DNA of 64,000 nucleotides from Monocercomonoides exilis PA203 (GCA_001643675.2 LSRY02000004.1:124001-188000); one strand, 5' to 3'; counted from the stretch's first letter, positions 2,634-64,000 are shown. Notes: generated from the sequence alone by a model not told the origin. Numbers and translations are program-made.

Positions 2634-3019
2634 ACATATTCAGTCATTTTTCTTCATGTCACACTTCTCGTTCACTTCACTTCCATCTCTGATCATTTTA
2701 CAAAATCGTGTTTTCAAAATCGTTGAAATTTCAAATCATGCAAGATTGACATATCGTTTTCAATCTTTTCATTTCACTTAACCATCTGTTTTTAAAATCA
2801 TTTCTTTTTATTTTTCATTTTTTTAAATACGTTTTGAGCATTGCTCTCATTTCATTTCAATCTTTTTCATTCATTAAATAAATTTTTACACAATTTTTGA
2901 AACAAACAAACAGAAAAAAAATTACTTTTTAAGATTAAATAATTTCCAATCTTGACAACGTTGAACTGTCTTCGACTAAAATAAACTGCCCAAACAAGAA
3001 TCAACTTTTCTTTTGCATT

Positions 3020-3908: not shown

Positions 3909-4397
3909 TTAATCTTTCTTTGCTGCATACAACCATGACGTTGTTCCCAAAACTTCGTCTTCTTCCTCTTTGGTAAGATCTGCTGCAATTCCCCAATCAG
4001 CGCGAATCTCTTTTGCTGTTTTGTTGTGGAGCTTGGCAACAGCTGCTCTCACAAGAAGTTTGAATAATGAAGGAATAATCAATTTATCAGCATTGACCAA
4101 CATTCTCAAATGTTGATCATTATTTGCAGTAACTTTCTGAACAAATTTTTGGTCCCAGTCTTGTTTATCTGCCTCTGGAACAGATGAATCGTTATCTGAT
4201 TTTGCGTGATACTCGCAATATTCAAGAATGTGTTTAAGATCCTCGCTGTGAACTGAATCCAATGTGATTTCTTCCTCTGCACTTGCGACTTCTAACAAAT
4301 TCTTAAGCATTTGAGATTGAAGCACAACATTCTTTGGTGCGGTAACTGTAACTCCATCAGCTGATAACAAACGATAAACTTCTCCCTCTGCAGACAT
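3909..4397 (-). CDS. SKP1: SKP1-family protein (divergent), intronless, 162 aa
   Basis: LLSADG...QSQMLKNLLE, ITLDSVHSEDLKHILEYCEYH, DWDQKFV and KTAKEIRADWGIAADLTKEEEDEV..SW follow the Skp1 POZ and dimerisation-domain consensus. Confidence 0.9.
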   Translation of the reverse strand: MSAEGEVYRLLSADGVTVTAPKNVVLQSQMLKNLLEVASAEEEITLDSVHSEDLKHILEYCEYHAKSDNDSSVPEADKQDWDQKFVQKVTANNDQHLRMLVNADKLIIPSLFKLLVRAAVAKLHNKTAKEIRADWGIAADLTKEEEDEVLGTTSWLYAAKKD

Positions 4398-19640: not shown

Positions 19641-19715
19641 AAATCAAAAACAAAAACAAAAACAAAAACAAAAAAAAAAACAAAACAAAAAATAAAAATA
19701 AAAAATAAAAAACAA
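19641..19715. repeat. (AAAAAC)n/(AAAAAT)n A-rich simple repeat ~190 bp upstream of the giant ORF
   Basis: Seen directly in the sequence. Confidence 0.85.
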
Positions 19716-19902
19716 GAGCGTATTTTTTTGCAAATAAATATAATTATTCGTTTAAAAGCAACAAATGAGCATAAATTTCATCACAAAAAATATGTATTTC
19801 GTTTTTTGAAATTGAGTGAAATGAATTTGCATATATAATTACTATTTAAAAATTTGATCATTATCTATTTTAATTATTGCCTAACAGCTTAAAGGCAAGC
19901 TA

Positions 19903-19971
19903 ATGAAATTCTACATTCACATTTTTGTATTGTTGAACTTTATATTCATATCGTTTACAAACATCTCAGCT
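19903..19971 (+). other. Predicted signal peptide of the giant protein
   Basis: MKFYIHIFVLLNFIFISFTNISA|HQ has a basic n-region, a hydrophobic h-region and a small residue at -1. Confidence 0.75.
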
Positions 19972-22900
19972 CATCAGAATTATGTTTATGAAGGTCAACA
20001 ACCATATGAAACAAATTTGATTTTCACAAAAACCACAGAAAATTTTCAGTTTTCCCAGAACATATTAAATGAAAAACACATAATTAATAAAAATTGCAAT
20101 GAATACGATGAGAAAATTGAAGATACAAAAGTTTTTGCGACAAATATAATAGCAACTCAAAATCTAAAAACTGTAGAATTTATAACAATCAATTCAACGA
20201 TGCAAATGAAAAAATTACATCTGCTTATAAATTCTTACCAACAATTACTCAATTCTGATGCACTTTCAACAATTTTCTTTGATGGTTGTTCTGTGAGATA
20301 TCTTTTTGAGCTACAACAATCACCAATTTCAACTTCAGGAACAATAATCATACAAAATTTAACTTTTAATTTATGGAACACTAAACAGAGCATATCTCAA
20401 TCTCTTGTTGCTTTTCATGGTGCTGGAGAATTTGTTTTTTGCCAATCTTTACTCAATGAAATAAATTGCCAAAGTGGAACTTCATTTTTTGCAAGTGGCG
20501 AACTTTTCAGTTTCAATCTGAATTCTTTGGGACTTTCTAATTTTACTACAAATAATCATAATGATGCTTTTTTGATTGGAACATCAATAAAATTCAGAAA
20601 ATGGAATAGCCAAACGACAAAAATTGAGAATTGCCACATAACTTCAGTAGATAATCCATTGAATGGGGCTATAGCCCAACTCGATGAATTAAAAGATTCT
20701 ATCGTTTCTAATACAACATTTTCCAAATGCACGACTTCAACGTTTTCAAATTCTAAAAACACGAATTCAGAGGCAAAAGAGTGCACATTGAGTGATATTG
20801 AATTTTTGCAATGCCATTGCTCGGAAAATTCAACGGGTTTTGCTGTGACTAGTCGTCAGAAAGTCTTTGTCATTCGATGCAATATTGTCGGTCCCTTCTA
20901 CAAGAATTATCAAGACTGTTCAGCAAATTCCACTTTGCATTCTTCTTCTTCTTCCTCCTGTTCTTCAAACTATTTATATTCAAACTTATATTCTTTTTTA
21001 CTCTTTCAACTTCCTCAACGAGATTCCAAAATTGTGAATTGTACATTTTGGCCTTCGCAATTGGAATGCTGCAATAAGAACCAAAAACACTTTTTCCTTC
21101 TAACAATTCAATCTTCTGACGAAACATTTAACGTAAGAGATTGCACGTTTGACTTGAAGGAAATCAGTCAGCACCAGAGTAAAAGAAAATATAAGATCAT
21201 TTCACTTATCGGAAATTATGATACAACTGGCACTTTTTGTTTTTTTAATTGCAGTTTTAAGTTGAACTCTTCATTTTCTTTGAACGAAGTATCCAACAAT
21301 TTGTTATCTTCTGCTGCAATCAGCAGTGCATCTTCTTTTCATTTTCTCAAACGCTTCATCAATCTCGACAATTTTTGGATTTCTTCGCATATTATTTCTT
21401 CTTCAGTTAATTGTTCTGAGAACGCATTAGTTTTTCTCTCAGAGCTTATCTTGACACGTGAAGAGAATATTTCAGACATATTTAATTATCAGTTTTTATC
21501 TTCACATTCTTCTTCACTTAACTCAGCATCCACACAATCTGTAATCACTTCTTCATCTTCTTCGCAGCATCGTCCCCACGACATTGAAAATGCAAATGAT
21601 GCCATATTTGTCAGTGATAGCGGGGCAGATGCAAATGGCTGCGGCACAACTGAAAATCCATGCAAAACACTTGAAGGCGCTTTACAGAGCTGTGGCTCTC
21701 CAAGTAATGCCATCTCAATTGAGATACAAGGCACCTTTTCGATAACAACATTTGTAGTACTTGCAGTAAATGCCTCAAATATCGTTGCACCGCTTAAGGG
21801 AACAGAAGTGGCTGCTACAAAACCAGCAAGCGGGAGCAAAGATGCGCTTATTGAAGTTGTTATTGAAACATCAATGACAAATATTACTTTTGTTATCCCT
21901 GGAACAATATCTCCTCTAAAGTCATTTTTTGTGTGCAGTAACAGCACATTAACTCTGTCAAACTGTTCAATAAAGTCAAAGTCATCGGCTTCTCTGTATA
22001 ATCAAAATTCCGCAACAATCTCTAATTTTTTTGAACCTTTTCTGAGACTTACTGGCGGAAGTGCAGTGCTTCAGTCAATGGAACTCGAAAATATTTCGTA
22101 TAGTGCTTCTTCATTTATTGAAATATCCCATTCTTCTTCTTCTGCAAAACTAACACAAGTGACTTTTACGCAAATTGTAACTGCAGCTGATGATTGTGGA
22201 GTTATTTCTGTTCGCAATGGAGGATCTCTTGTTGTTGGGGTAAATTCTTTATTCAATGGAAATAGTAACAGCTTTGAACGACCTTATTTTTTAATCGAGG
22301 ATGCTTCTTATGTGAATATAAGTGATTCACACTTTTCAAAATTTACAACGACATTAACACCAATCATCAAATTTGTGCAAGCAAGAACTTTTTCAATAAA
22401 TAGTTCAGCATTTTCGGAAATTAGTTCCAATTCTGTGAATGGGTCTGTACTTTCTTGGATTGATGGGATCACTTCTAGCGAGTGCAGAATCAATAATTGT
22501 AGCTTTTTGCAGTGTTCAACAACTGGGGATCATACATTTGGTGGAGTGATATACGCAGCACTTTCCCCACAACTGCGACTCAATGTGGAAAGATCGATAT
22601 TTACAACTTGCAGCTCAAGAACGATGGCTGGCTGCATTTTCATTAAAGCAAAAAGTACGTCTTGCAGTTTTTTCATTTCTGGAAACACATATACAGAATG
22701 CACATCCACAATTGCAGGACGAATGGTCATTGATACGAGCAATCTGACAGAATTGCTTTATCAAAAAAATCTACTGAAAGATATTTCAACAGCAGACTAT
22801 GATAAAGAAGAAATTCGAAAAGCATTTTTGGGATATGAAAATGAAGACTACACTGTTCCAATTCCGTTATGCATTTTTATAATGGACAGAAACCAGAACG

Positions 22901-25900
22901 AGGTATATGTGAAAATGAAAGATGCATCTTCTACATCAAGAAAAGGTTATCTATCAGGTGGCCACAATTTCACTGGATGTGGCTTTCAAGATTTCCCTTG
23001 CGCCACTGTTAATTATGCAGCTTCAGTGAGCTTGCCTTCTTCGTCTGACTGTTTTATTTATTTGATGAAGGACTATGTTATAACTGACTCAATCTATTTA
23101 AACAAATCAGATGCAACACTCACTACAAGTCCATCAAATAGTCGGATAAACGTGTCATCAACAGTGAACGCAGAATCCACTTCTGGCCTTATCACAGCTG
23201 TTGTTACATGTAATGTGAAAAACATTGAATTCTTATTACCCTCCAAAATTGGCAATTTGGAAGCATTTTATAATCATAAGAATGCCTCATCAACATCTTT
23301 TATCTCTTCAACAACCTTTTCTTTTATGAATCCCTCCGAGAATCAGACTTTTGTGTTATTTAAGAGTTCTGAAGGATCTATCGTTTTGAAAAGTGTAAAA
23401 TTAGAAAATGTTGTATGGGGAGACAAAGCAGTTATTAGCGTTGAAGCATCAGCATCTTGTGAAATAAAAGATTGCGCATTTACAAATGTGCATACAACAA
23501 GTGTTCCTTTTATTCAGGTGGAAACATCTGGCAATCTTAAGCTATCAAGTACAACATTTTCATGCACGTCTTCAACTGAAACGTTTACGAAGGCATTCAT
23601 TTCATCAGAGACTTCTTCAACAATCCAATTTGAAGGTGGTTCCTTTTCATCAATTAAACTTTCGGGCACTTCTTTGATAGAATGTAAAAGCAGAAAACTT
23701 GAAGTTAACCGAACCAATTTTCAATCCATAACACAAACAAACCCTCAAGGAGCTTGCTTTCTTACAGATCAATCGCCGATCGAATTCTCTTTGAATGGCG
23801 TTTCGTTTGAATCATGCAAATCTGAAACGCAAAATGTTGAAGGAGGAGCTGTTCGAACAGTTCTCGATTCTCAATCATCTTTCATTTGCGCCAACACTTC
23901 AATCACTTCATGCGAGGCCTCACCTGACAATAACGGAAAAGGAGGAGGATTATTTCTGTATTTATCCGAAGCTGAAGCTTCGTTTTGCTTTTCTAATTCC
24001 ACCAACAATCCTTCTTTGTGGAGCAACAACAATGCTACGTATGGGAAAAACATTTTTATTTCATCACCAAATCTTAGCACATCATGCAAAACAACCAGCT
24101 TCGAGCAATTCGGGTCATATTCCAACTGGGATGCATTTGATGCAGAAGGATACGATGTAAGCAACTCACCAGCAATCCCTCTAAAATATTTTTACATTAA
24201 CCGTTCATTGCCCATATGTGTTAACGAAGCTAGAAATTGCGAAGATGTTTCATTCTGTGGTTACTTAGATTTACCCTGTAGAACAATCAATTATGCATTT
24301 GAGAGGGTATCAACCTTGGGAGAATATAACATTTCCATCATTGAAAAAGTTATACAATGCGAGCTTTTTAACCTTTCAACCCACTCTTTAACAATTACAA
24401 CCTCATCAAGCCAGTCAATGGTAGAAATCAGTCCAACAACCACAGGACCCGAATCAATGTTTATTTCTCGACAAGATTTTTCTTGGTACAATGCAGTATT
24501 TAATGTTACTTCTTATCAATCTCTGAAAATGATATTTTCTTCAAAAGAAAATATCCTTAAATTTGTATCGTGCTCTCAGCGTGTTGAAAGTACAACTAGT
24601 GGATGCCGTATTTCGTTTGCCGTAGTGGACGGAGGCTCACTTATTATGCAATCATTTACGGTTTCCTCTTCACATCCAGAGTCTACTGCTCCATTTTTTG
24701 AAAGCACTCCATTTGTTGCTACATATTCAGGCTCACTTGAGATTGAAGAGTCCACCTTCAAAAATAGATCATCTTCTAATTCTCCTTTTATCTTAGCGAG
24801 TGGAAGCACCGCTACCTTAATACTTAAAAAAGTTATATTCCACAACTTTAACTCAATTGATACTCTTCTCGTATCTGCTTCTTCGGCATCTTCACTTTCT
24901 TTATCAAATGTCTCATTTTTAAACATCAAAACAAGCAACAGTTGTTTGATCGAAGTCACTTCAACTACATTCACTTGTAACGGAGACTCTTATTTCGATC
25001 AAATACAATCAACAAACGGAAATGGAACATGCATTAAAGCGAGCGTTACTTCACAGGATATTATTCTTAATAATTCTACTTTTTCAAATTCAGCAGCAGG
25101 TGGAAGCAAGTCATGCGGTGGAGCATTACATCTCACTTTCTCCAACGAAGGAAGTACAACATTGTCATCAAATTCATTCTTTACCAATTCAGCCAGCGAT
25201 TCAGATGGATTTGGTGGTGCTATTTACATGCGCGCATTAAACTCTGATTGCCGCATTGATATACAGACACAAATTGAATCAGGGAATCATGCATTTCGAG
25301 GATCTTTCATTTTTCTCGAAGGAATAAATCTAACTGAATTACTGTATCAGAAAAATAGGTTCTCAATTATTCCTCAATCAAACTACGAAAACAAAAGTAC
25401 ATGGACTCAATATTTGAGCGGAGAAAATGGCGATCAAATTAATCAAGTTCCTATTGTTGCATATTTGATGATTCGAAATGGAAGCGAAGCTTTCGTCGAC
25501 GGCCCAGATTCAGAAGGTTCAATAGAAAATGGTTATGTTTCTGGGGGATATGATTTCACAGCATGCGGCTTCTTAGACTTTCCTTGTGCAACAATTGCAG
25601 CAGCAATTAGCAACAGACTTCATGAAGTTAGTGGATGCAAAATTAATCTATTGTGTCACTTTGTGATTGATCAAAACTATTTGTTAAAAGACCCATTAGC
25701 AATACTTACATCTTCTCCTGCTAACACTCAAATAAACATTTCATCAAATGCAGCTTTTCAGGCAGATGCAACAGCTCTTTTTACCGCTACGACAACAGTT
25801 ATTGTTGAGAAAATAGATTTTCTTCTACCGTCTCAATTTTCATCAACATCTGCCGAAGCCTTTTATCTTCAAGACTCTTCTTCGACTCTTTCAACGTTAC

Positions 25901-34900: not shown

Positions 34901-37900
34901 TTTCCAGTGCAAGTCAAAAGGAGCAACTCTCATATGATAGTGGGTCAGTGTGCATAAATGGTTCTCAACCATCAAGCATGATATCTGTTGAACATACTAA
35001 TTCAACGGGGCAGTTTATTTTCAGAATTAATGCACCGTGGATACTTTCTTCTCTCTATTTTCAGATACTGTCAACTGGATCCTCAGTGAATACGATTTTT
35101 TCCGTTGTTAACTCAAATATATTACTTCAACAATGCGTACTGTGCCAACAAGATCCTTCTATTCCTTTTCAAGTGACATTTCTTGATTGCTCAGGTGGAA
35201 CAGCTAATTTTTCTGACTTCTCTTTTTTGTGCACCACGGCAACTGAAGATTCTCTTCTTTATGAAAACAAGCCATTTGTTAAAAGTAGATTAAGTGGAGC
35301 CATTGCCTTCGAGAATTCAGAAGTGATGGCAAGAACTTTGGGAGGAGTATCATTGTTCAGTGCAGAGTCAGGTGGATGCATAAACATGACTGAAGCAGTT
35401 TTTCAGAATTTAAAGATTTCATCTCCTGTGCTTCAAATTGGAGCGAGTTCGAAAGCGAATATGGCTAATTGTCAGTTTATTGATTTATCTGTTACGTCTT
35501 CTGCGGTAATTCAATCAAATACAGGGATATGTAATATTTCTTATTGTGTTTTTTCTTTGGTAAGTTTAAGCTCTAAATCACTAATTGAATTCGCTAATGC
35601 CATTGCAAATGTGGAAGGGAACAAGTTCAATGATATCACTTTATCGTCTGGAAATGGCTCATCTTTGAATATATTAAACGATGGTGCTTATATAACTTTG
35701 AGTAATAACACATTTGCCAGATGCAAAACTCTGGCAGGCAAATCCTGTGGTGGTGCGTTGTACGCAAACATGCAAAGTTTATCTGGTTCAATTGTTTTGC
35801 TTCCATGTAATTTTTCACAATGCAAAGCTGATCCAAACACAGAAGGTAAAGGTGGAGCACTTTGCTTTAATTTTTCAGAACCTTCGTCAAATTACACGAT
35901 TGATTTTTCCTCAACGATGCTAATGACTCAAAATGAGGCAAAAGTTGGCTTTAATATCTTTGTTATATCATTAGATTTATCTGAATCAATCACAACAGCT
36001 CATTTTATAAACTGTCCAACATTATCGTGGGGCTGGAATGATGCTGTTGGAGTTAATTCAGATCTTGATGCACAAGTTATTCCTCTTCAATTTTTCCTTC
36101 TTGAAAAACCTTCTTCTTTGTTTGTTTCATCTTCTATCGCAAAAAGCGATGATTCTCCAATTTGCGGATTTGAAATATATCCTTGTTTAACGCTCAATTA
36201 TATTCTTTCCGAGCGACCTCCATTATCTTCTGATTCAATACGTGCAACAATCATTTTACAATTAATTCAGGATGCTTCAGTAAATTTGGACTCAAAGCAG
36301 CTAATTTTATCTGGGCATTCTTCACAGGCAGAATTAATTGTTAATCAATTCTCAAGCAATGAAAAGCAACTCTTTTCCATTTTGCAATCGTTAACTGTAA
36401 ACGATATTACTTTCATCTTTACAATGAAAAATGAGTTGGAGACTGTTTTTCTGATTAAAGAGGGCTTGTCAAACATTCACTCCTGTTTAATTCAGCCTGC
36501 ATTAGATGTGAGCGGATGGCCCATTTCATTTGCTCATGTAACTGGTGGCCAATTGGAAATTACAAACTTTTCACTCACTGTCGAACCCCTTGCTTCAGAT
36601 GCACTTTTATTAGCTCGATCTTTTATTTCTGTTAACATTTCTGGGAATGTGGTTATTCAATCTTGCAAATTCCATTCACGTTCAACAGGAGAAGCATTTT
36701 TTAAAGCGTTCTGGGGAGGCTCCTTATCAATTCAATCTTCTTCATTCAGAGTTATGAATCAGGTGAAAAAACCTCTTATCTATGCTTCGGCAGCGAGAGA
36801 AGTTATTTTGAATGCTTCAACAATTGAAAAGATTGAATTCATAAATTCATCTGCAATTGAAGCAGTAGAATGTACGAATGAAGTTAAATTGATTTCATCA
36901 AAAATATCATCTTGTAACAGAACGACTGGATCAGCTGCTTGTATAGTCGCGAAAAACAATGCTGGAGATCTTATCATTAACAACAGCATATTTGAGGGCT
37001 GCTCTTCACTTAGCGAGAATACAGATGGAGGAGCTATTCACATAGAGCTTTCTTCTGAAGATGGAGAAATGATATTTTATGATAATAATATTTCATTATG
37101 CAAGTCTAGTCCAGCAAGTAATAATGGAAAAGGAGGAGGAATTTTCCTTCTTCTTTCAACTATAAACGCACGATTCACATTTTCCAACACCACCGGAGCT
37201 CCGTTATGGCTTAATAACGTTGCACATGAAGGAAGAAATCTATTTATTAACGGATCAAATTTATTCGAAAGTCTTTCTGAATCAAACTTTGTTCAATTCA
37301 ATCAACCTTCTGCTTGGGATACAGAAGATGCCAAAGGAATGCAAAACGATAACACTTCAGAAATAATACCAATAAAATATTTCTTTTCAGATATTTCCCA
37401 AATCATACATGTTTCATACAATGGCATGGATTCTTCCGCTTGTGGAGATATTGAATACTCATGCAACAGTTTGCCTTACTCTTTCTCAAGACAAAATTCA
37501 GCAACGAAAAAAAGATATGTGGCAGTTGTGGAGAGAGTGAATGTGAGAGGAGAATTGACATATTCTGATGGAAGTGTTGACATTCACAGCTCCAAGTCTG
37601 CGGACTGGTCTGTTGTTGATGTGGACATGACAACAGGTTCGTGTACGAGTATCTTCAGTGTGGAAGTTCCTTGGACGCTTAAGCTGATAGCATTTACGAT
37701 TGGAGGTGTGCCGGCATCTGTCAAGTCGCTGTTTGGCGTTACGGCGTCGGTTCTCTCTCTGCAAAATACCAAGCTTTGCCAGATCAGTGCAGCAGGATAT
37801 ATGTTTTCTTTTGTCTCGGTAATCAGCGGGTCTGTGAAGATTAGTGTGTTTAATTTTGATGGAGACGTCCGCTTTGCAAATTCTCCCCTCTTTTCTGGAA

Positions 37901-40900
37901 GTCCGATGATTTCTGTGAGTGGAAATGGAACATGTGATATTTCTTCAATGAATCTCCATTTGCGAGGCAGCACAGGAGCAAGCTTCATATCAGTTGTTGA
38001 CGAAGGAGAATTGATGATTAACAATGGAGGTGTTGAGAACATCGATGAAATGGATTCGAGTGTGGTGTGTGTGAATAGCGAGAACAGCACTTTGGATGTA
38101 AATGGGACAGTATTTAGTTCGCTTGTTTTTACAAGCAGCAGTGCTGTTGAGGTGCAAAACATTCGCTCAGGGATTATTCAAAACAGCACTTTTTCGTTTG
38201 TGAGGAAAACAAATGGAAGTGGAAGTTGCCTGGAATGTGCTGTTGGGAAAGGAGAGCTTAAAGTGAATGGGAATCGGTTTGACGGATGCAAAGTCAACTC
38301 ATTAGAAAGTTGTGGAGGGTGCTTGGACTTCACGATGGACAATGCGGCAGGGAAAGTGAGTGTTGATGGCGATGTTTTCATGAACTGCGAGGCGAGCGTG
38401 GCCAATGAAGGCAAAGGCGGTGCGCTGCATATGAATGTGAAGGAAGTGTTCAGCACATTTAGTATTGCAAATAGGACGATTGGAGACTGGTTTGAGAACA
38501 AAGCTTCAAAAGGCAAAAATGTCATGGTTGAATCACCGTCGCTGAGAACATCAGTCACGAACAACAGCTTCTATTCTTTTGCGTATTTTTATTGGGAGAT
38601 GGATGAATTTGAAGGATTTGACAATGGAAAAATTGATCTGTCGATCCCCTTGAAGTACTATCTGCTTGACAGGCCGGAATCTCTTCGTGTGTCATCGTCA
38701 GTTGCAAAAAGAGCAGACACGACAGCATGTGGCTTTGATGAATATCCGTGTGCGACGCTGGCTTATGGGTTGAGCGAGCAACTTAATCCGACGAAGAAAA
38801 TAACGATTATTGGAAGATTGGATCAAGATGCAAGCATTACTGTATCGTCTGGAAACACGACGATTGAAACGCATGCTTCTGGAGGCGAAATGAGCATTTG
38901 CCAAACAGCAAGCGCGGAGAAGCAACTGTTTTTGTGCTCAGCTGCATTTGCGATGAAAAAAGTGTTGTTTTCATTGGCTTCTTCGAAAACATTAGAAACT
39001 GTTATTCGCGTGTCTGATTCCACGACCGTGGTTGAAGGCAGCAGAATTCGGCGAGTATCGGAGAGTGAAAGATATAATTTCACATTTATTGTGTCAACCG
39101 GAGGCACGGTAATTTTGGAACAGTTTTCATTTGATCTTGGGATGCTGACTACGGCAGGCGTTCTGTTTTCTTCGTATCCAATGGTTGATTCAAAAGGAGG
39201 AGAAATCAAAATCCAGAATTCTGTTTTTGAAAAGCTGGGATCAGAAGGATCTCCGCTATTTGTTTCAGAAACCAGCGGGCGTGTGTCTTCAACGAATGTA
39301 ACAATAAATGGGATGAGTGGGCTGACACAGCCTTTGTTTTATGGCAGCGGAACAAGTACTGTGACGATTGCAGGTGTTTCGTCTTCGCCTATTGTTATTA
39401 GTAATATAACATCATCTGCAAACTTAATAGCGATGCAAGATTCAACAAGCTTACTGACAGAGAATGTGAAGTTCAGTGAAATAAGGATGAGTGCGGGAAG
39501 TGCAGTTTTCTGCAATTCGATACAAGATTTGAGGGTGTTGAAAACATCATTTGAAAATGTGAGCAAAAGTGTTGGAAATGGAGCAGCGATTAATGCTGAA
39601 AGCGGCTCTGGAGCAGTTCGGATTGAATCGAATACATTTGTGAGGTGCAGTGCGACTGAGGCGAATGGATGTGGAGGAAGCATATATTGCTATTTGAAGA
39701 GCGACCCGGCGCCACAAACTGCAATGATAATAGAGAACTCATTCACTTCCAGCGCAACAGCCTCGGATTCAGGATATGGAGGAGCGTTTTACTGCTTGAT
39801 AGATGATAGCGACCATTACTTCAACTTACGGAACACGTCCAACACATGGACAGGGAATAACGCGCTTCATGGAAAGAACATTTTTGTTTCGTCAGCAACT
39901 CTTCGGAATTCGCTGGAAAAGCCAGACGTGTTTATGGGCTTTGAGCCATCGAGCTGGAATGAAGAAGATTACGAAGGGTTTGATCTTCCCGACCAGCTGA
40001 CATCGATCCCGTTGAAGTACTTCTTTTCAAACATTGACGTGAATGTATTTGTTGGCGATGCTGGCTTGGATAATGATGCGTGTGGAGACGAGCTGTATCC
40101 ATGCCAGTCGATATCATACTCATTTTCCAGGCAGCAAAAGGAAACACGGAAATGCAGCATTTTGAATTCTGTCAATCAAACGAGAGCTTTGAGCTATGCC
40201 CTTGGGAATGTGAATATAGCAGGTGCGCTATCAGGAACGAAGAGCAGTATTGCTGTGGAGCAGATGTCCGGGAGTGAGACATGCGTATTTGGGATCACTT
40301 TGCCATGGACATTTGAGAACATCTGCTTCAAAGTTATAACAGTTCCGGCGTCTGTGAAATCATTAATTGCAGCAAGCTCGCAGACATCAACGCTGAAACT
40401 TCTGAGGACGTCGCTTCTGCCAAACGCATCCGGTGTATTTGAGTTCAGTTTTTTGAGTGTAACTGCCGGAAATGTTGAAATAAGAGAATTTGGATTTGAG
40501 GTTTCTGAATCTGACCGAATGGGTTGTGTGACGAGAGGCACTGGAGTCATTGAAATAGAAGGGAGTACCTCTCGATGCTTGATTGCAGACAGTACGTTCA
40601 GTTTGAAGGGAAGCGAGGAATCAGGGTTAATTGTAGTGAAGAAATCAGGAGAGCTTAATATTTCTCATTGCAGATTTGCAGAGCTCGGCGGTGTCAATAC
40701 GTCTGTGATTGAAGGATCAGCACTTGGATCGATTCGGATTGGCGAGAATACAAATTTCACGGCTTTTTCTAATTTTGATGGGCCGCTCATTTCGGTTTCG
40801 ACGTGCACGCTTTCTTTTACTGAAACATATTTTATTAATGTGACGGCATGCAAAGTTGCGATTGTCAGAGCAAGTGGGGAAACAGACATTACTTTGAGTA

Positions 40901-43900
40901 ATTCTACTTTTGAAACGATTGAGATGACCACAGCTTCCGCAATTGAGTGTGAAGAAATTGCTTCTACAGTAGTGAGCAAAAACAAATTTACAGAAGTTAA
41001 AAGGAGCAATGGAAACGGATCATGCATTTCAGTTACAACGGGAAACGGGACTATGAATATTGAATCAAATGTGTTTTTGAAGTGCGCTGTAGATGATGAA
41101 AACGCGTGTGGAGGAGGAGTGTACTGCAAACTGAAAAACGACGGAGATGGAAAGATATTGAATATGAATGAGAATTCGTTTGAAAGATGCGCTGTCTCCT
41201 CAACATCGGGGAAGGGGGGTGGAATCTGCATTGACATTGGAGATGTGCAGCGGCATTTCACGATAGTAAATTCTTCCCTTTCCAGCTGGGCAGAAAATAT
41301 TGCGAGATACGGGCGGAACGTTTTTGTGATCTCTCCGAATCTTCGAGAATCGGTAACTTTTAGTTCTGGATTTGTTGGATTTAATCCGCAGATGTGGACT
41401 GAAGATGATTACTATGGAGTTGACACGCGGGACTTATCTACTCTGATTCCTTTGAAGTACTTCTTTTCAAACATTGACGCGAATGTATTTGTCGGCGATG
41501 CTGGCTTGGATAATGATGCGTGTGGAGACGAGCTGTATCCATGTCAGACAATGGAATACTCATTTTCTAGGCAGCAAAAGGAAACACGAAAATGCAGCGT
41601 AATAGCGTCATTGAGCCAGACATCAAAACTGTCATATTCCAGCGGGAGCGTGCAAGTATCTAGCACCGTTTCAGGAGTAAGAAGCAACATTGTTGTGGAA
41701 CAAAGAACTGGAGTGTTTACAGAAATGTTTGAAGTGACCGTTGCATGGACCCTTGAAGATATCTGCTTTAATGTAACATATGTGCCTTCATCTCTAAAAT
41801 CTTTGTTTGCTGTTTGCTCATCTGACGCGACTTTAAAGCTTGAGCGCACAGTTTTGAAGCCGAATGGAACAGAAGCCTTTTTGTTTTGCTTTGTTAGAGC
41901 ATCTTCGGGGATGGTAAATATAAGCCAGTTTTCATTTGAACTATCAGAGTCAGACAGGATGAGCTGCGTAACAAAGGGATGTGGGCTTATAGAAGTTGAT
42001 GGAGAAGACGCAAGGTGCTTAATTAAAGACAGTGAGTTTTCGCGGAAAGGGAGCATTGAATCTGGAATGATTGTTGCCAAAGACAAGGGAGAGATAAATG
42101 TTATTCATTGCGAATTCAAGGAGCTGAGCGATAATGAAGGAGTTGTTATTGAAGGAAGCGCAGGAAGCACGATTAATATTGGGGGTTCTACAAGATTTTC
42201 ATCATTTACCAACAGCAAAATGCCGGCAGTGTCGGTGATATCAAGTGTGCTTGCGATCACAGATACATCCTTTGCGGATATGTCTTCGAAAGAATCGGCA
42301 ATAATATCTGCGACAGGAGAATCTGGAATATCTGCGAGGGCATGCACATTTGCAAATATTGAAATGAGCAAAGCTTCGATAGCAAAGCTTATTGATGTGG
42401 CTTCTGTCTCATTTGCGGAGAATAGCTTTGATAATATCAAAAATGCAATTGGGAATGGGTCTTGTCTTTTCGTCACATCCACGAACGGTACAACTAGCAT
42501 TGAATCCAACACATTTACCCATTGTGTGAACACTTTTGAAGAAGGCTGTGGAGGTAGCGTGCATATCCAGCTGAAGAGCAGCGAGACAAGCGAGATGGCC
42601 TACATACTTGGAAACTCATTTGAAAGATGTGCCGCATCCTCGACAAGAGGAAAAGGAGGTGGATTGTACATTGACGTGATCAATTCGATGCGGTATTTTA
42701 AGATTACGAACACTTCGATTTCGAGATGGGCAGAGAACACAGCAAAATACGGGCAAAATGTATTTGTTGCATCTCCAGATCTTCGGGCTTCTGTAACTTC
42801 TGATTCTGCATTTGTTGGGTTCAGTCCGTTGGCGTGGCCGGAAGACGATTATTATGGAACCGATACTCGAGACTTGTCGACTTTGATTCCGCTGAAATAC
42901 TTTTTCTCTTCGCTTGTACCCTATGTTTATGTTGGCGATGTTGGAAAAGACAATGATGCATGTGGTGACCAATCATATCCTTGCAATTCCATCGATTATT
43001 CTTTCTCAAGACAAAATTCAGCAACGAAAAAAAGATATGTGGCAGTTGTGGAGAGAGTGAATGTGAGAGGAGAATTGACATATTCTGATGGAAGTGTTGA
43101 CATTCACAGCTCCAAGTCTGCGGACTGGTCTGTTGTTGATGTGGACATGACAACAGGTTCGTGTACGAGTATCTTCAGTGTGGAAGTTCCTTGGACGCTT
43201 AAGCTGATAGCATTTACGATTGGAGGTGTGCCGGCATCTGTCAAGTCGCTGTTTGGCGTTACGGCGTCGGTTCTCTCTCTGCAAAATACCAAGCTTTGCC
43301 AGATCAGTGCAGCAGGATATATGTTTTCTTTTGTCTCGGTAATCAGCGGGTCTGTGAAGATTAGTGTGTTTAATTTTGATGGAGACGTCCGCTTTGCAAA
43401 TTCTCCCCTCTTTTCTGGAAGTCCGATGATTTCTGTGAGTGGAAATGGAACATGTGATATTTCTTCAATGAATCTCCATTTGCGAGGCAGCACAGGAGCA
43501 AGCTTCATATCAGTTGTTGACGAAGGAGAATTGATGATTAACAATGGAGGTGTTGAGAACATCGATGAAATGGATTCGAGTGTGGTGTGTGTGAATAGCG
43601 AGAACAGCACTTTGGATGTAAATGGGACAGTATTTAGTTCGCTTGTTTTTACAAGCAGCAGTGCTGTTGAGGTGCAAAACATTCGCTCAGGGATTATTCA
43701 AAACAGCACTTTTTCGTTTGTGAGGAAAACAAATGGAAGTGGAAGTTGCCTGGAATGTGCTGTTGGGAAAGGAGAGCTTAAAGTGAATGGGAATCGGTTT
43801 GACGGATGCAAAGTCAACTCATTAGAAAGTTGTGGAGGGTGCTTGGACTTCACGATGGACAATGCGGCAGGGAAAGTGAGTGTTGATGGCGATGTTTTCA

Positions 43901-46900
43901 TGAACTGCGAGGCGAGCGTGGCCAATGAAGGCAAAGGCGGTGCGCTGCATATGAATGTGAAGGAAGTGTTCAGCACATTTAGTATTGCAAATAGGACGAT
44001 TGGAGACTGGTTTGAGAACAAAGCTTCAAAAGGCAAAAATGTCATGGTTGAATCACCGTCGCTGAGAACATCAGTCACGAACAACAGCTTCTATTCTTTT
44101 GCGTATTTTTATTGGGAGATGGATGAATTTGAAGGATTTGACAATGGAAAAATTGATCTGTCGATCCCCTTGAAGTACTATCTGCTTGACAGGCCGGAAT
44201 CTCTTCGTGTGTCATCGTCAGTTGCAAAAAGAGCAGACACGACAGCATGTGGCTTTGATGAATATCCGTGTGCGACGCTGGCTTATGGGTTGAGCGAGCA
44301 ACTTAATCCGACGAAGAAAATAACGATTATTGGAAGATTGGATCAAGATGCAAGCATTACTGTATCGTCTGGAAACACGACGATTGAAACGCATGCTTCT
44401 GGAGGCGAAATGAGCATTTGCCAAACAGCAAGCGCGGAGAAGCAACTGTTTTTGTGCTCAGCTGCATTTGCGATGAAAAAAGTGTTGTTTTCATTGGCTT
44501 CTTCGAAAACATTAGAAACTGTTATTCGCGTGTCTGATTCCACGACCGTGGTTGAAGGCAGCAGAATTCGGCGAGTATCGGAGAGTGAAAGATATAATTT
44601 CACATTTATTGTGTCAACCGGAGGCACGGTAATTTTGGAACAGTTTTCATTTGATCTTGGGATGCTGACTACGGCAGGCGTTCTGTTTTCTTCGTATCCA
44701 ATGGTTGATTCAAAAGGAGGAGAAATCAAAATCCAGAATTCTGTTTTTGAAAAGCTGGGATCAGAAGGATCTCCGCTATTTGTTTCAGAAACCAGCGGGC
44801 GTGTGTCTTCAACGAATGTAACAATAAATGGGATGAGTGGGCTGACACAGCCTTTGTTTTATGGCAGCGGAACAAGTACTGTGACGATTGCAGGTGTTTC
44901 GTCTTCGCCTATTGTTATTAGTAATATAACATCATCTGCAAACTTAATAGCGATGCAAGATTCAACAAGCTTACTGACAGAGAATGTGAAGTTCAGTGAA
45001 ATAAGGATGAGTGCGGGAAGTGCAGTTTTCTGCAATTCGATACAAGATTTGAGGGTGTTGAAAACATCATTTGAAAATGTGAGCAAAAGTGTTGGAAATG
45101 GAGCAGCGATTAATGCTGAAAGCGGCTCTGGAGCAGTTCGGATTGAATCGAATACATTTGTGAGGTGCAGTGCGACTGAGGCGAATGGATGTGGAGGAAG
45201 CATATATTGCTATTTGAAGAGCGACCCGGCGCCACAAACTGCAATGATAATAGAGAACTCATTCACTTCCAGCGCAACAGCCTCGGATTCAGGATATGGA
45301 GGAGCGTTTTACTGCTTGATAGATGATAGCGACCATTACTTCAACTTACGGAACACGTCCAACACATGGACAGGGAATAACGCGCTTCATGGAAAGAACA
45401 TTTTTGTTTCGTCAGCAACTCTTCGGAATTCGCTGGAAAAGCCAGACGTGTTTATGGGCTTTGAGCCATCGAGCTGGAATGAAGAAGATTACGAAGGGTT
45501 TGATCTTCCCGACCAGCTGACATCGATCCCGTTGAAGTACTTCTTTTCAAACATTGACGTGAATGTATTTGTTGGCGATGCTGGCTTGGATAATGATGCG
45601 TGTGGAGACGAGCTGTATCCATGCCAGTCGATATCATACTCATTTTCCAGGCAGCAAAAGGAAACACGGAAATGCAGCATTTTGAATTCTGTCAATCAAA
45701 CGAGAGCTTTGAGCTATGCCCTTGGGAATGTGAATATAGCAGGTGCGCTATCAGGAACGAAGAGCAGTATTGCTGTGGAGCAGATGTCCGGGAGTGAGAC
45801 ATGCGTATTTGGGATCACTTTGCCATGGACATTTGAGAACATCTGCTTCAAAGTTATAACAGTTCCGGCGTCTGTGAAATCATTAATTGCAGCAAGCTCG
45901 CAGACATCAACGCTGAAACTTCTGAGGACGTCGCTTCTGCCAAACGCATCCGGTGTATTTGAGTTCAGTTTTTTGAGTGTAACTGCCGGAAATGTTGAAA
46001 TAAGAGAATTTGGATTTGAGGTTTCTGAATCTGACCGAATGGGTTGTGTGACGAGAGGCACTGGAGTCATTGAAATAGAAGGGAGTACCTCTCGATGCTT
46101 GATTGCAGACAGTACGTTCAGTTTGAAGGGAAGCGAGGAATCAGGGTTAATTGTAGTGAAGAAATCAGGAGAGCTTAATATTTCTCATTGCAGATTTGCA
46201 GAGCTCGGCGGTGTCAATACGTCTGTGATTGAAGGATCAGCACTTGGATCGATTCGGATTGGCGAGAATACAAATTTCACGGCTTTTTCTAATTTTGATG
46301 GGCCGCTCATTTCGGTTTCGACGTGCACGCTTTCTTTTACTGAAACATATTTTATTAATGTGACGGCATGCAAAGTTGCGATTGTCAGAGCAAGTGGGGA
46401 AACAGACATTACTTTGAGTAATTCTACTTTTGAAACGATTGAGATGACCACAGCTTCCGCAATTGAGTGTGAAGAAATTGCTTCTACAGTAGTGAGCAAA
46501 AACAAATTTACAGAAGTTAAAAGGAGCAATGGAAACGGATCATGCATTTCAGTTACAACGGGAAACGGGACTATGAATATTGAATCAAATGTGTTTTTGA
46601 AGTGCGCTGTAGATGATGAAAACGCGTGTGGAGGAGGAGTGTACTGCAAACTGAAAAACGACGGAGATGGAAAGATATTGAATATGAATGAGAATTCGTT
46701 TGAAAGATGCGCTGTCTCCTCAACATCGGGGAAGGGGGGTGGAATCTGCATTGACATTGGAGATGTGCAGCGGCATTTCACGATAGTAAATTCTTCCCTT
46801 TCCAGCTGGGCAGAAAATATTGCGAGATACGGGCGGAACGTTTTTGTGATCTCTCCGAATCTTCGAGAATCGGTAACTTTTAGTTCTGGATTTGTTGGAT

Positions 46901-49900
46901 TTAATCCGCAGATGTGGACTGAAGATGATTACTATGGAGTTGACACGCGGGACTTATCTACTCTGATTCCTTTGAAGTACTTCTTTTCAAACATTGACGC
47001 GAATGTATTTGTCGGCGATGCTGGCTTGGATAATGATGCGTGTGGAGACGAGCTGTATCCATGTCAGACAATGGAATACTCATTTTCTAGGCAGCAAAAG
47101 GAAACACGAAAATGCAGCGTAATAGCGTCATTGAGCCAGACATCAAAACTGTCATATTCCAGCGGGAGCGTGCAAGTATCTAGCACCGTTTCAGGAGTAA
47201 GAAGCAACATTGTTGTGGAACAAAGAACTGGAGTGTTTACAGAAATGTTTGAAGTGACCGTTGCATGGACCCTTGAAGATATCTGCTTTAATGTAACATA
47301 TGTGCCTTCATCTCTAAAATCTTTGTTTGCTGTTTGCTCATCTGACGCGACTTTAAAGCTTGAGCGCACAGTTTTGAAGCCGAATGGAACAGAAGCCTTT
47401 TTGTTTTGCTTTGTTAGAGCATCTTCGGGGATGGTAAATATAAGCCAGTTTTCATTTGAACTATCAGAGTCAGACAGGATGAGCTGCGTAACAAAGGGAT
47501 GTGGGCTTATAGAAGTTGATGGAGAAGACGCAAGGTGCTTAATTAAAGACAGTGAGTTTTCGCGGAAAGGGAGCATTGAATCTGGAATGATTGTTGCCAA
47601 AGACAAGGGAGAGATAAATGTTATTCATTGCGAATTCAAGGAGCTGAGCGATAATGAAGGAGTTGTTATTGAAGGAAGCGCAGGAAGCACGATTAATATT
47701 GGGGGTTCTACAAGATTTTCATCATTTACCAACAGCAAAATGCCGGCAGTGTCGGTGATATCAAGTGTGCTTGCGATCACAGATACATCCTTTGCGGATA
47801 TGTCTTCGAAAGAATCGGCAATAATATCTGCGACAGGAGAATCTGGAATATCTGCGAGGGCATGCACATTTGCAAATATTGAAATGAGCAAAGCTTCGAT
47901 AGCAAAGCTTATTGATGTGGCTTCTGTCTCATTTGCGGAGAATAGCTTTGATAATATCAAAAATGCAATTGGGAATGGGTCTTGTCTTTTCGTCACATCC
48001 ACGAACGGTACAACTAGCATTGAATCCAACACATTTACCCATTGTGTGAACACTTTTGAAGAAGGCTGTGGAGGTAGCGTGCATATCCAGCTGAAGAGCA
48101 GCGAGACAAGCGAGATGGCCTACATACTTGGAAACTCATTTGAAAGATGTGCCGCATCCTCGACAAGAGGAAAAGGAGGTGGATTGTACATTGACGTGAT
48201 CAATTCGATGCGGTATTTTAAGATTACGAACACTTCGATTTCGAGATGGGCAGAGAACACAGCAAAATACGGGCAAAATGTATTTGTTGCATCTCCAGAT
48301 CTTCGGGCTTCTGTAACTTCTGATTCTGCATTTGTTGGGTTCAGTCCGTTGGCGTGGCCGGAAGACGATTATTATGGAACCGATACTCGAGACTTGTCGA
48401 CTTTGATTCCGCTGAAATACTTTTTCTCTTCGCTTGTACCCTATGTTTATGTTGGCGATGTTGGAAAAGACAATGATGCATGTGGTGACCAATCATATCC
48501 TTGCAATTCCATCGATTATTCTTTCTCAAGACAAGCGAAAGAGGAAAAGAGTTGTGTTGTATTGAATAAAACCATATTAACAAGAAAATTGCATTATTTA
48601 TCTGAAGATACTTCAAGTATTAATATTAAAAGCGTTTTATCAGGAGAAAATTCTTTTGTAGAATTTAACTTTATGACTGATGAAGTTTGCGAGGAATGCG
48701 TTGTTGTGGAAGTTACATGGAGAGTATTATATGTCACATTTAAGGTTGCAAATGTGCCTGTTTCTTTGACATCGTTGATAAAGATTTCTTCTTCTTTTTT
48801 ATCTTCAATATTACTATCAAATTGCAAAATATGTCCAAAATCTGAAACGGAATCCTTTAATTCCAGCTTAATATCAGTTGAAGGAGGAAAAGTTTCTTTG
48901 GATAAATTCTCGTATGATTTGGGATCATCTTCGTCTGTTCAACCTATCTTCAATGGATGTTCAATGTATGATTTAAAAGGAGGTCAAACAATATTGGAAA
49001 ATGCAATTGTGGAAAAAAGAAGCTCGGTAGAAATTAGTTTAATGTCAATAGATCTTGACGGGGTATTTACAATCGCTAATTCAACTTTGAGGGACTTTCC
49101 TGATATTAAACAACCTTTGATATCTGCATATGATCGAGCACAATTGTTGATACAAGGAACAGAACTGCTTCCTGTTACATTTATGCAAATTGCAAGTGCA
49201 TCATCGTCTTTAATATTTCTTTCAGGTTCTTCATCTGCAACTTTAACGTATGTTACATTTCAAAATTTGATATTTGGAGATCGTTCAATTATTTTCTTGA
49301 GCGCATCAACTTCATTTGCATGCACACAGCTTCTTGCCACTGGAATCACTTTTGCAAACGGATCTGTTTTTCAAGCAAATAATGCAAGAAGTATTCAAAT
49401 TTTAAATTCTCAGTTTTCAAATATTCTTAGGACTGCAGGAAATGGCTCTTGCATTTGGATAGAAGCAGGAACAGACCCTTCTGTCTCGTTGACCAATCCT
49501 TCACATCAAATAGCAAATTCAAACTTTACTCAATGCCGAGTAACAGAGCAGCTTAGAGGAGGAGGTGCTGTTTATTCATTACTTGGATATGGAACTTCTG
49601 CAAGTAACTACGTGAATTGGCAGATGAGCGGGTGCTTTTTCAGTGAATGTGAAGCTCCAGTTACGGGCGGCATCATTTACTCAGCAGACGATAGACGTAG
49701 TGATCATTTAAAAGGTTATACACAATATGGAAAAGGAGGTGGAGTATTCCTTTATTTACTTGATTCGAATGCCACTTTCACATTTGATTCAAGAATGTCT
49801 TTCTCAAATAACAAAGCAGATTTTGGAAAAGATATCTTTATTTCAACGCCTTGTTTAGCTGATTCTGTTCGACCTAGCCGTTTTCCTTGGTTCAGCGATG

Positions 49901-58900: not shown

Positions 58901-61900
58901 TTGACAACTGTCGAGTTATGGACGAGCATGAAGATTTACAAGAAGGTTGTGGAGGAGCAATCTACGCGGATCTTCAAAGAGGAACAAAACTGACTTTGAA
59001 CTCTTTGTGCACTTTCCAAAATTGCTATGTTCCTTCAACATTGCCAGAAATGAAGGGGTATGGTGGTGCAATGTTTTTCAAATTAAGGCAAACGGATGTT
59101 GACTGGCATATTGATTGGATTGACTTCCCATCAATTGGAGATGCAAATAGGAACAGGGCAGTATTTGGAAGAGATCTTTTTATAACTTCTCAGAATCTTA
59201 CAAAAAGCATTACAATTGACAGATTAGATTGCCCATCATGCGGTGAAGATGGTATCAGGAATCCTCGTGATTTCGATCATTCATCTTTGGAAGGGTTCAA
59301 TGACACGGATGAAACTCATGCAATTCCATTAAGATACTTCCTCACATCCTTTGAAATGAGAGAGATTGGCTCAGGAGACGATGCTGTTATCTTTCCAGTT
59401 GGTTTTGTTGGAACTGAAGGTGTGGATTCAATCTGTTGTGGCTTCTTCAACTACACATGCGAGTCATTACCTTGGCTTGAAACACGAATATTGTCCTCAA
59501 CAAATTCTAATCTCAATGCAATTGTAGTTATCAATAGCTCTCTAATTTTGACAGAAGAGTTTAAAAGTTTGTACAGCGAATTGCAGATCCAAAATGATCC
59601 GTTAACAGATGTTTGCCATCTTATTGTGAAAAGTATATCTGAAGGAAGCCGCAAAGGAGTCATATGCAATGATCAAATATTATCTATCACAAATGTTGCA
59701 TTTTGCATTCCGTCATCATTTAGAAGACACGAAGCATTGTTCCTTCAGTCAAACGGAGAACTCAACATACAAACCTCAAACATTATCCCAACTGATTCTG
59801 GGTCAGTGCTCAGTTATCCACTCTTTGTTGTAACTGGAGGGTCTCTTGCTGTTTCAGACTTCGAAATTGTGCCTGTTCAACCTCTTTCATCGGATGAAGT
59901 GCATCAAGAAAGCTTATCTTTTGGGAAATCAAACTCTTTGCAACACAGGAAAAATCAGGATGCGTCACCTTCGGCAATTCAAATCAACAAATCTTCTCTT
60001 TTACTTATTAATGGCACTGGAAAAGTATCGCTTACAAGAATGACAGTGAAGGAGCTTCTATTAGCTGAAGAGAATCCATCATTAGTTATTCAAAGTGGTG
60101 CATCCATTTCGTTTGAATCGTGCATATTTGATGGAATAGGCTTTCCAGCTTCTTCTCTTATTTCTACGTCGATGGGAGAGTTGAGTATTGAATCATCATC
60201 ATTTTCAAATATGAACTGTATTTCATCCCCCCTAATCACTTCTGAAACATCACGTTCATTTTCAATGACAAACAGTAATTTTACAAATATTGCCCGAGAA
60301 TCGGGAGATGGAAGCTGTCTTCACTTTGAGGAAGGTGACCTCCCTGAGTCATCACTTACTGAGATAGAAAAAATAGTCGCAATGTCTCACTGCAATTTTA
60401 CAAATTGTTGCATAAAGAATTCTTTGGATGAAAACAACGAAGGGAGAGGAGGAAGTATTTTTGCACGATTAAGCGCAGGTGTCAGATGGACGTTTGATTC
60501 TTCTTCAATTGCCCAGTCTTCGGCTCCATATGACAGCAGTTCATCCAAAGGAAAAGGAGGTGGGATCATGATTTATGCAGTTGACAGCGCTTTGGATTGG
60601 GAAATAAATCCAATTTCTTTCCCTGAACTGGGTCAGATTGATCAAAATCAAGCATTTTCTGGAAGAGACATTTTTGTTTCGAGTCCGGCATTAAATTCTA
60701 CCGTAACTAAATTATCATTCATTTGGGATACATGGGATTATCAGCAGTCATATCGCTTTGACCATTCATCCATGGAAGGGTACAATGAACACAATTCTGA
60801 ATATGTCATTCCTCTCCCTTACTATTTGTATCAGCTTCATCCAACCATTTATGTTTCAACGCCACTTGGATTCGATACAACAGCTTGTGGATTCGATAAT
60901 TACACATGTCAAACTCTTCCTTGGGCAATCTGGCGCCAAACTGGAAACGATGAAGCAGTCGAAGGCGATGTGACGATCAATTCGACTGTAATTGTGAAAG
61001 AAGAATATCAAATTGTTACAAAATCGCTTAGCATAAAGTCAAATGAATCACAAAGCCAAATTATCATTCAGAATGGTATAAACCAATCTCTTGATGCAAT
61101 TTTGTTAAACCAGAAAATTTTATCATTTACGAACATTGATTTCTTCCTCCCACAGACGATTGGTCAACATCAATCAATCATCCACAATAAAGCAAGTGGA
61201 TCTACAACAATTGATAACTCTCAACTGATTGTTACTGACATATCACATGAGTTGCAGTATCCATTTTTGGTTGCTGATGGTGGATCTGTGTCACTTCATT
61301 CATTCGTAGTCGAGCCATGTTCGGCTGGATTCAGTTCTCAGTCAGCAAACGATGTACAGTCAATAATATTTAATTCAACTTCACTTCTGTTGGCAAAAGG
61401 AAGCTCGACTGCCATAACTATCAACGCACTCACTTTCACTGCAGCAAAATTCATCGGAAGCGAAACTTTGTTCAAAATAACCGAATCAGCTTCATTTACA
61501 ATTTCTAATTCCAAATTTTCACATCTGGATGATATGTCAGTTTCTCTGTTTGATTTATTAGGAGCTTCAAGGTGTTCAGTTGAATCACTGATTGTTGAGG
61601 ATATTGATGAAAAATGTGATCGTCCATTTATTTCAGCAGATAATTGTGTTGAATTTTGTCTGCAGCACTCAAATGTTTCATCATATCGATCATCTTCATC
61701 TTCTGTTCTATCAATAACCAAAACTCAACAATCTTCATTAGAATCAAATAATTTTTCTCTTGTCGAAGTCGAACAAGAATCTGCAATCTCTGTTACAAAT
61801 GTGAAAAGGAGGTTTTCAGTGATTGATTGCAGCTTTAAAGACATCAACCGTAAATCCAGCGATGGGTCATGCCTTTCTTTCAACGAGAAAGAAGAAAATT

Positions 61901-64000: not shown

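Follow-up and report, generated by a model that had tools for sequence, protein, structure and literature searches.

The stretch of DNA analysed here, referred to as the window, comprises 64,000 nucleotides of Monocercomonoides exilis PA203 (contig C36:124001-188000). Translated in frame +1 from the ATG at 19903, it gives 14,699 codons without a stop through 63999, and an in-frame TAA at 19882 lies 21 nt 5' of this ATG. When the frame is extended with the next 10 kb of the contig (C36:188001-198000, here called L003), it is closed by a TAG at window coordinate 69880 (L003:5880-5882), 5.9 kb past the window edge. The complete open reading frame (ORF), at C36:143,903-193,882, runs uninterrupted for about 50 kb (49,980 nt including the stop codon) and encodes 16,659 aa, with a computed mass of 1.81 MDa and a pI of 4.9. 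A preliminary description of the window had proposed an ORF of at least 44 kb and at least 14,699 aa, starting behind an in-frame stop, still open at the window edge and belonging to one gene that ends beyond 64000. Translation through the adjacent sequence to the stop bears this out, and the megadalton scale given there also stands, although the figure of ~1.6 MDa has to be revised upward.

Given the base composition of the window, a stop codon is expected about every 15 codons, so that an ORF of this length is beyond chance. The other five frames are short, as had been noted earlier: their longest ORF has 1,705 aa, lies on the minus strand at 10022-15139 and is located upstream of the giant gene, and the next longest in the minus-strand frames has 247 aa. 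The features of the locus are the following.

909-2633, plus strand: TPX2-domain ORF, intron-free (domain match)
3001-3627, minus strand: NOSIP-type zinc finger ORF, intron-free (domain match)
3909-4397, minus strand: complete Skp1 with POZ and dimerisation domains, intron-free (domain match)
10022-15139, minus strand: the 1,705-aa ORF, Ser/Pro-rich and of low complexity, with no Pfam match
19641-19712, plus strand: A-rich (AAAACA)n tract, about 190 nt before the ATG in an AT-rich (23% GC) upstream region
19882-19884, plus strand: in-frame TAA, closing the frame 5' of the start
19903-19971, plus strand: start codon and putative signal peptide, aa 1-23, MKFYIHIFVLLNFIFISFTNISA (then HQ), read by eye
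19972-21603, plus strand: N-terminal region of 544 aa, aa 24-567, only faintly module-like and with no Pfam match
21604-63999, plus strand: tandem modules M1-M31 and the start of M32, predicted beta-helices, aa 568-14,699 (HMM tiling)
37480-48534, plus strand: exact tandem duplication (sequence identity, junction contig, 2:1 depth)
to L003:3506, plus strand: rest of M32, M33 and the divergent M34 (HMM tiling)
L003:3507-4580, plus strand: stalk of 358 aa between M34 and the transmembrane helix, aa 15,869-16,226
about L003:4581-4652, plus strand: predicted transmembrane helix, a hydrophobic segment at about aa 16,225-16,250
L003:4653-5879, plus strand: predicted cytoplasmic tail of 409 aa, acidic and Ser-rich, with a polybasic cluster near its end
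L003:5880-5882, plus strand: stop codon TAG (translation)

The TPX2-, NOSIP- and Skp1-like genes upstream are eukaryotic genes, which agrees with the eukaryotic origin assumed for the giant from the outset. The 1,705-aa ORF forms a patch of 50-53% GC, compared with 37% for the genome, and has no exact protein on record. The (AAAACA)n tract may be part of a promoter or 5'UTR. An AAAUAAA-type motif is located about 280 nt 3' of the giant's stop codon, which would fit the polyadenylation signals reported for M. exilis and its mean 3'UTR of 312 nt. About 640 nt past the stop codon, at L003:6524 (~70524), a new ORF begins with MVNFTVAQLREHMGNRHNIRNMSVIA, which looks like the N-terminus of elongation factor 2.

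Apart from its putative signal peptide, the giant protein has a single segment of transmembrane grade, which is followed by RRRNRKKR; there is no second such segment in the whole protein. Both features support the entry into the secretory pathway that had been claimed, the C-terminal helix being located past the window edge. The preliminary description had advised looking for a transmembrane helix, a GPI signal or a cytoplasmic, kinase-like domain; the helix is there, and the 409-aa tail contains no kinase domain. The 34 tandem modules span aa 568-15,868, are 377-536 aa long and are separated by gaps of 0-15 aa; in the HMM alignment, three of the 34 are split, and the last, which is divergent, aligns only in part. 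Ser makes up 15% of the ectodomain, in which there are 301 N-glycosylation sequons.

The N-terminal 567 aa give only a non-significant alignment to the module HMM, and an Atlas feature search with them points weakly to beta-helix and parabasalid hypothetical proteins (scores of at most 0.90, low recognition). The region of aa 24-567 may be a divergent beta-helix cap. The stalk has neither an Atlas nor a Pfam match and contains no recognisable Ig-like domain. In the last 1,959 aa, Pfam at E<=0.1 shows neither a kinase nor an autotransporter barrel, and stalk and tail show no BLAST similarity to the relatives found in the protein library. The whole protein, scanned against Pfam in 5,000-aa pieces, has nothing at or above the curated cut-offs.

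Sequence and predicted fold of the modules

The modules typically start with V.V..G.D...CGF..YPC.T and contain the further motifs GGAI, GKGGGI, N.A..G.N.FV and IPL.Y.L. Their median pairwise identity is 22%, and apart from the duplicated block and the pair M15/M16 (54%) they are at most 34% identical. Tandem Repeats Finder shows no repeats in the giant gene, because the modules are too diverged at the DNA level. The columns conserved in at least 60% of the modules are of a core type (Cys, Gly, Phe, Asn, Pro and Leu) and make up the motifs given above. At this level, charge is conserved only at D9 and R29, which belong to the N-terminal cap, and at K334; the helix body has no conserved acidic cluster, and there is no conserved catalytic-type residue among these columns.

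Module M8 (aa 3607-4029) was modelled with AlphaFold2, with 29 diverged modules of the giant serving as their own alignment. The model (pLDDT 87, pTM 0.89) is composed of short strands with a triplet rhythm throughout. Among 48,161 PDB representatives, VIA-align, the most informative of the structure searches, aligned about 280-340 residues of the model with right-handed parallel beta-helices, at Z 19-25 and an rmsd of about 3-4 Å. Matches at Z 21-25 over about 300-340 residues include the AlgE4 epimerase (Z 24.9, 318 aa, 3.0 Å), lyases (RbmB and PL6), phage tailspikes, the adhesin PfbA (Z 23.4) and the passengers of Vag8 and pertactin (Z 23). The Foldseek matches in the PDB score weakly and are likewise all beta-helices (E 1e-4 to 1e-2, TM 0.2-0.44), and the ESM Atlas neighbours belong to beta-helix, DUF1565, autotransporter and Chlam_PMP "adhesin-like" clusters (TM 0.55-0.67). 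A model of two modules keeps both helices (pLDDT 83.7, pTM 0.62). The modules of the giant are thus predicted to be right-handed parallel beta-helices, and the likeness to giant repetitive bacterial adhesins, drawn earlier, is borne out in design by 34 such modules in tandem.

The sequence searches for single modules are faint. Pfam indicates Chlam_PMP (PF02415) in 4 of 29 modules, with a best E of 5.6e-5, and Beta_helix in 1 of 29; module 1 scores 10.7 bits against PF02415, for which the cut-off is 20.6, and the whole-protein scans give no Chlam_PMP match. The module profile finds nothing below E 0.16 among the PDB sequences.

The best structural matches (AlgE4, RbmB, PL6 lyases, GH28, GH87 and tailspike depolymerases) would also suit a surface-anchored array of carbohydrate-active enzymes, whose modules would be lyases, hydrolases or epimerases of the polysaccharides in bacterial capsules, mucus or dietary fibre. 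We consider such an array improbable: the identity to the enzyme structures is only 7-12%, no Pfam enzyme family is indicated, the three conserved charged columns leave the helix body with no acidic cluster, and adhesins and passenger domains score equally well. Individual modules could be enzymatically active. Since the conserved catalytic-type residues are lacking and the fold is common to enzymes, adhesins and sensors, we favour non-catalytic binding for the array.

Tandem duplication, assembly and transcription

The sequence at 37480-43014 is identical to that at 43000-48534. The repeated unit is an in-frame block of four modules (5,520 nt), arranged in tandem with 15 nt shared at the ends, and at the DNA level it has only two copies in the genome, both of them local. 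In the region 38000-48000, the GC content is 43-44%, compared with 36-38% in the rest of the gene, and the GC skew, at about +0.2, is strongly positive by comparison with the remaining gene. Gene conversion from another locus was considered as the source of this GC-rich block and rejected, because only the two local copies exist at the DNA level. M15 and M16 lie inside the duplicated block, and their identity suggests an earlier duplication event.

The public runs were searched with a 4.9-kb mid-gene stretch (40600-45500). Four DNA runs, all of one sample, which is probably the source of the assembly, contain 98-100% of its sampled words. In the 2022 DNA run, the depth is 209 for the repeat unit, 100 for the contig across the junction (42985-43029) and 106 for the single-copy flank; in the 2016 run, the corresponding values are 11.6, 5.9 and 5.9. 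With the junction at single-copy depth and the unit at double depth, there are exactly two copies and the duplication is real.

The M. exilis PA203 assembly is Nanopore-based and comprises 82,301,135 bp in 101 contigs (PMC8767320). A long-read assembly of a repeat-rich genome, together with a perfect 5.5-kb tandem repeat within the gene, invites the explanation that a mis-assembly joined paralogous modules or inflated the array. This explanation is scarcely credible. Sequencing errors break frames and do not create them, so that an intact 50-kb frame in such an assembly argues for a correct sequence. The contigs of the 2016 and 2022 DNA runs match 40600-45500 except where adjacent paralogous modules cross-map, the junction and unit depths agree with two copies, and modules of at most 34% identity outside the duplicated block and M15/M16 leave little to mis-join.

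The same mid-gene stretch is present in four RNA-seq libraries of a second study, again with 98-100% of the sampled words, and the contigs (not the raw reads) of two of these runs span it entirely. In the two runs, the RNA depth is about 74 for the repeat unit and 61 and 44 for the junction contig; the flank has a depth of 17.4 in one run. RNA libraries can contain DNA, a caveat on this evidence; the contigs of one run add up to 63.8 Mb in total, less than the 82-Mb genome, which makes even genomic carry-over at that depth unlikely. The source study of the RNA runs is probably one on M. exilis that used DNase-treated, rRNA-depleted total RNA (PMC12308965). The giant gene therefore appears to be transcribed, as judged from this one 4.9-kb stretch. 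The longest contigs in two metatranscriptome RNA runs have 24,149 and 23,968 nt; these contigs of about 24 kb could be transcripts of the giant or of another giant gene.

A family of predicted oxymonad surface proteins

The module profile gives 131 matches in the genome of M. exilis itself, distributed over 36 or more distinct open frames with lengths of 2,000-10,375 aa; 96 candidates out of 10,308 flagged were scored, and the count is a lower bound. The largest paralogous frames have 10,375 aa (C22), 9,080 aa (C58), 8,211 aa (C25) and 8,137 aa (C14), followed by frames of 5,036 aa (C1) and 4,746 aa (C91) and about 15 near 4,100 aa. The preliminary description had presented the giant as the best candidate for a novel system. 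It does not stand alone: a big family of oxymonad proteins, of which the giant is the largest found, is already in the databases as hypothetical proteins and receptor-like kinases.

Searching a library of 1.84 billion representative proteins with the module profile yields 4,795 proteins at E<=1e-3, 410 of them at E<=1e-30. Of the 30 top matches sampled, every named one belongs to M. exilis, Blattamonas nauphoetae or Streblomastix strix, the others being unnamed proteins of metagenomes or of Logan, and the relatives from the three named oxymonads match the profile at E 0 to 1e-76. As far as sampled, the module family of about 430 aa seems to be specific to oxymonads. Literature searches found no published description of it. 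The module is shared by the M. exilis proteins MONOS_5407 (7,986 aa), MONOS_955, MONOS_336, MONOS_9641 and MONOS_5695, by B. nauphoetae BLNAU_15988 ("adhesin-like", 6,570 aa) and by S. strix EZS28_009714. The giant differs from these in being at least twice as long as any family member found in the protein library, and its identity to the best 150 of the 4,795 matches does not exceed 36%.

The layout of a module array followed by one transmembrane helix and a tail is found in 19 of the 21 relatives examined, the other two having extra hydrophobic segments. Two intact giant paralogues, of 10,356 aa (C22:878333-909457, minus strand) and 9,077 aa (C58:1281031-1308270, plus strand), share with the giant a signal-peptide-like start, one transmembrane helix, an acidic tail and a polybasic end; the signal-peptide-like N-termini were read for these three proteins only. 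The tails of the three giants cannot be aligned by BLAST and have a common design, which consists of a basic stop-transfer, a long acidic Ser-rich stretch, Trp-acidic patches (for example, NPWGQFEE, IDWEGEEED and MDEWEIG) and a Lys/Arg cluster near the C-terminus. This design could be a sorting or cytoskeleton-linking signal.

Several annotated relatives have a tyrosine-kinase-like domain at their end. The Pfam tyrosine/Ser-Thr kinase domain PF07714 is present in the tail of 9 of the 13 relatives retrieved with the N-terminal aa 1-3200, and some Blattamonas members have kinase or PPM phosphatase domains. MONOS_7290, 3938, 13035, 4902, 119 and 388 combine the ectodomain modules of the giant and a single transmembrane helix with PF07714. 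These kinase-bearing relatives have 7-18 module matches each, some of them partial, compared with 34 modules in the giant, and the giant differs from the M. exilis TKL receptor-like kinases in that its 409-aa tail has no kinase domain (PF07714/PF00069).

The kinase and phosphatase domains behind the same ectodomain modules, and the tail layout common to the giant and its 10,356-aa and 9,077-aa paralogues, allow the giant to be read as a kinase-less receptor, co-receptor or decoy, which would serve mainly in signalling or ligand buffering and less in adhesion, either by means of its tail or in a pair with a kinase-bearing paralogue. We regard this role as rather unlikely, given that 34 modules are more than any receptor needs, that no domain is recognisable in the tail, which BLAST does not relate to the tails of the library relatives, and that the giant has no known ligand or partner. 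A binding or spacer role at the cell surface is the reading we prefer.

With 332 genes, the TKL kinases form the largest gene family of M. exilis (PMC6759080). Repeats, most of them unclassified, occupy about 37.8 Mb of the assembly and overlap tyrosine-kinase genes (PMC8767320). The beta-helix module likely explains the overlap of unclassified repeats with TKL kinase genes, and it may account for a good part of the 37.8 Mb.

No protein near-identical to the giant was found in the library. The search with aa 568-5405 against proteins of 5,500-17,500 aa gives only MONOS_5695, at 22% identity; with aa 1-3200 against proteins of 1,760-5,600 aa, there is no close match (best identity 29%), and with aa 1-900 against proteins of 495-1,575 aa there is no match at all. 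Neither is a near-identical protein among the best 150 of the 4,795 profile matches, where any fragment with at least two modules of the giant would rank. The gene looks unannotated in the public protein sets searched. The earlier expectation that gene predictors would miss or fragment it agrees with these results, obtained over the N-terminal part for proteins of 495-17,500 aa. The 10,356-aa and 9,077-aa paralogues are not among the best 150 matches either, and the absence of the three largest family members reconstructed here suggests that annotation systematically overlooks the longest genes of a single exon. Models of up to 7,986 aa from the M. exilis assembly are present in the library, as are paralogues on the contig of the giant itself, and a length limit of protein collections may lie behind the absence of the longest members.

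The mostly unclassified repeats that overlap the kinase family, together with a gene that is not found in the public protein sets searched, could also mean that the array is decaying or selfish, a part of these repeats that is open by accident and yields no functional protein. This is very improbable. The frame has 16,659 open codons, and the core motifs are kept at a module identity of about 22%, which implies long purifying selection; furthermore, the signal peptide, transmembrane helix and tail are intact, and the RNA libraries contain the mid-gene stretch.

Proposed function and comparison with known systems

Overall, we consider it probable that the locus is a genuine single-exon M. exilis gene encoding a 16,659-aa type I membrane protein with a glycan- or bacteria-binding or spacer role. 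The putative signal peptide would direct the protein into the ER, and an ectodomain of about 16,200 aa, made of 34 abutting beta-helix modules, would be held at the plasma membrane by the one transmembrane helix. The acidic, Ser-rich tail of 409 aa, which has no enzymatic domain and ends in the polybasic cluster, would face the cytoplasm. With about a dozen coils and about 6 nm per module, our guess is an ectodomain of about 200 nm, in the form of a fibril or a string of rods. The giant would be a non-catalytic surface binding molecule or a spacer or coat molecule; it may engage glycans on bacteria, either prey or associates, or in gut mucus, and gain avidity from its many diverged modules.

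The proposed fibril that binds glycans or bacteria follows from a fold that is the classic one for polysaccharide handling and for adhesins, and from the life of M. exilis as a bacterivorous gut commensal. Binding to bacteria is further suggested by the relatives in Streblomastix, an oxymonad covered by attached bacteria. M. exilis itself feeds on bacteria by phagocytosis (PMC12308965). Within the family, the giant would be the kinase-less, hyper-expanded extreme, with smaller members in which the ectodomain modules are joined to a tyrosine-kinase-like domain in the cytoplasm. Blocks of modules are probably added to the array by tandem duplication in frame, the exact four-module copy being the latest step and displaying the growth route of such arrays.

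A broader reading, which we put forward tentatively, is that the module of about 430 aa defines an undescribed superfamily of eukaryotic surface receptors and adhesins. The module would be the ectodomain of the TKL kinases and make up a sizeable share of the 37.8 Mb of repeats, and the kinase-less giants of 16,659, 10,356 and 9,077 aa would form fibrils of more than 100 nm, with which an amitochondriate phagotroph would catch bacteria or hold them. If true, this would be a eukaryotic convergent counterpart of the bacterial giant adhesins and of Trypanosoma cruzi DGF-1. The present results link the largest gene family of M. exilis, and probably some of the unclassified repeats, to one beta-helix ectodomain module and offer a concrete hypothesis of the way in which bacteria and glycans are sensed or held by oxymonads. 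M. exilis serves as the model of a eukaryote that lacks mitochondria, and arguments of the inventory type draw on its annotation, so that missed giants matter. A single exon of 50 kb is remarkable in a genome with, on average, about two introns per gene and is not unprecedented among protists.

The closest described analogue of the giant is, in our comparison, DGF-1. The T. cruzi protein has a signal peptide and tandem right-handed parallel beta-helix "ribs" of about 390 aa with about 12 coils each, seven ribs in total, an Ig-like "hat" domain and 7-9 transmembrane helices, and it belongs to a large multigene family that is poorly annotated owing to size and repetitiveness (bioRxiv 10.64898/2026.07.27.741050). 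Both are protist surface proteins with tandem beta-helix modules after a signal peptide, and the likeness is one of fold and layout. The giant has 34 modules, no hat and one transmembrane helix, and the host lineages are unrelated, DGF-1 being found in Discoba and the giant in Metamonada. DGF-1 has a total length of about 3,400 aa. Oxymonads would thus be a second, independent protist lineage, after the trypanosomatids, with tandem beta-helix surface modules of about 400 aa.

The giant also contains 34 GGA[ILVFM] and 60 FxxN motifs, reminiscent of the GGA(I/L/V)- and FxxN-type coils of the chlamydial Pmp proteins. The fold is like that of Pmp and other autotransporter passengers, such as pertactin and Vag8, and of the "adhesin-like" Chlam_PMP proteins of archaea or bacteria, but the giant has only two GG-motif coils per module, and its anchor is a single alpha-helical transmembrane segment with the 409-aa tail, whereas autotransporters have a C-terminal outer-membrane beta-barrel. 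Membership among the chlamydial Pmp proteins or autotransporters was therefore rejected, the beta-barrel translocator being lacking. The folds of PL1/PL6, GH28/GH87 and AlgE/AlgG match the module at Z 19-25, and the giant differs from these polysaccharide lyases, hydrolases and epimerases in having neither a Pfam enzyme family signature nor conserved catalytic-type residues. With the giant bacterial adhesins it shares the megadalton size, the tandem diverged modules and the proposed surface location, but the module family and the anchoring differ.

The preliminary description had ranked the protein among the largest eukaryotic surface or secreted proteins. Protist proteins of the size of the giant (16,659 aa) are known, with 17,226 aa in Toxoplasma gondii and 11,561 aa in Babesia duncani (PMC10993292). 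For the largest apicomplexan proteins, the reported domain matches (HECT, dynein-type AAA and polyketide synthesis; PMC10993292) indicate functions inside the cell, whereas the giant is a predicted beta-helix surface array. The giant is best seen as an extreme variant of tandem beta-helix surface proteins such as DGF-1 and not as a categorically new system.
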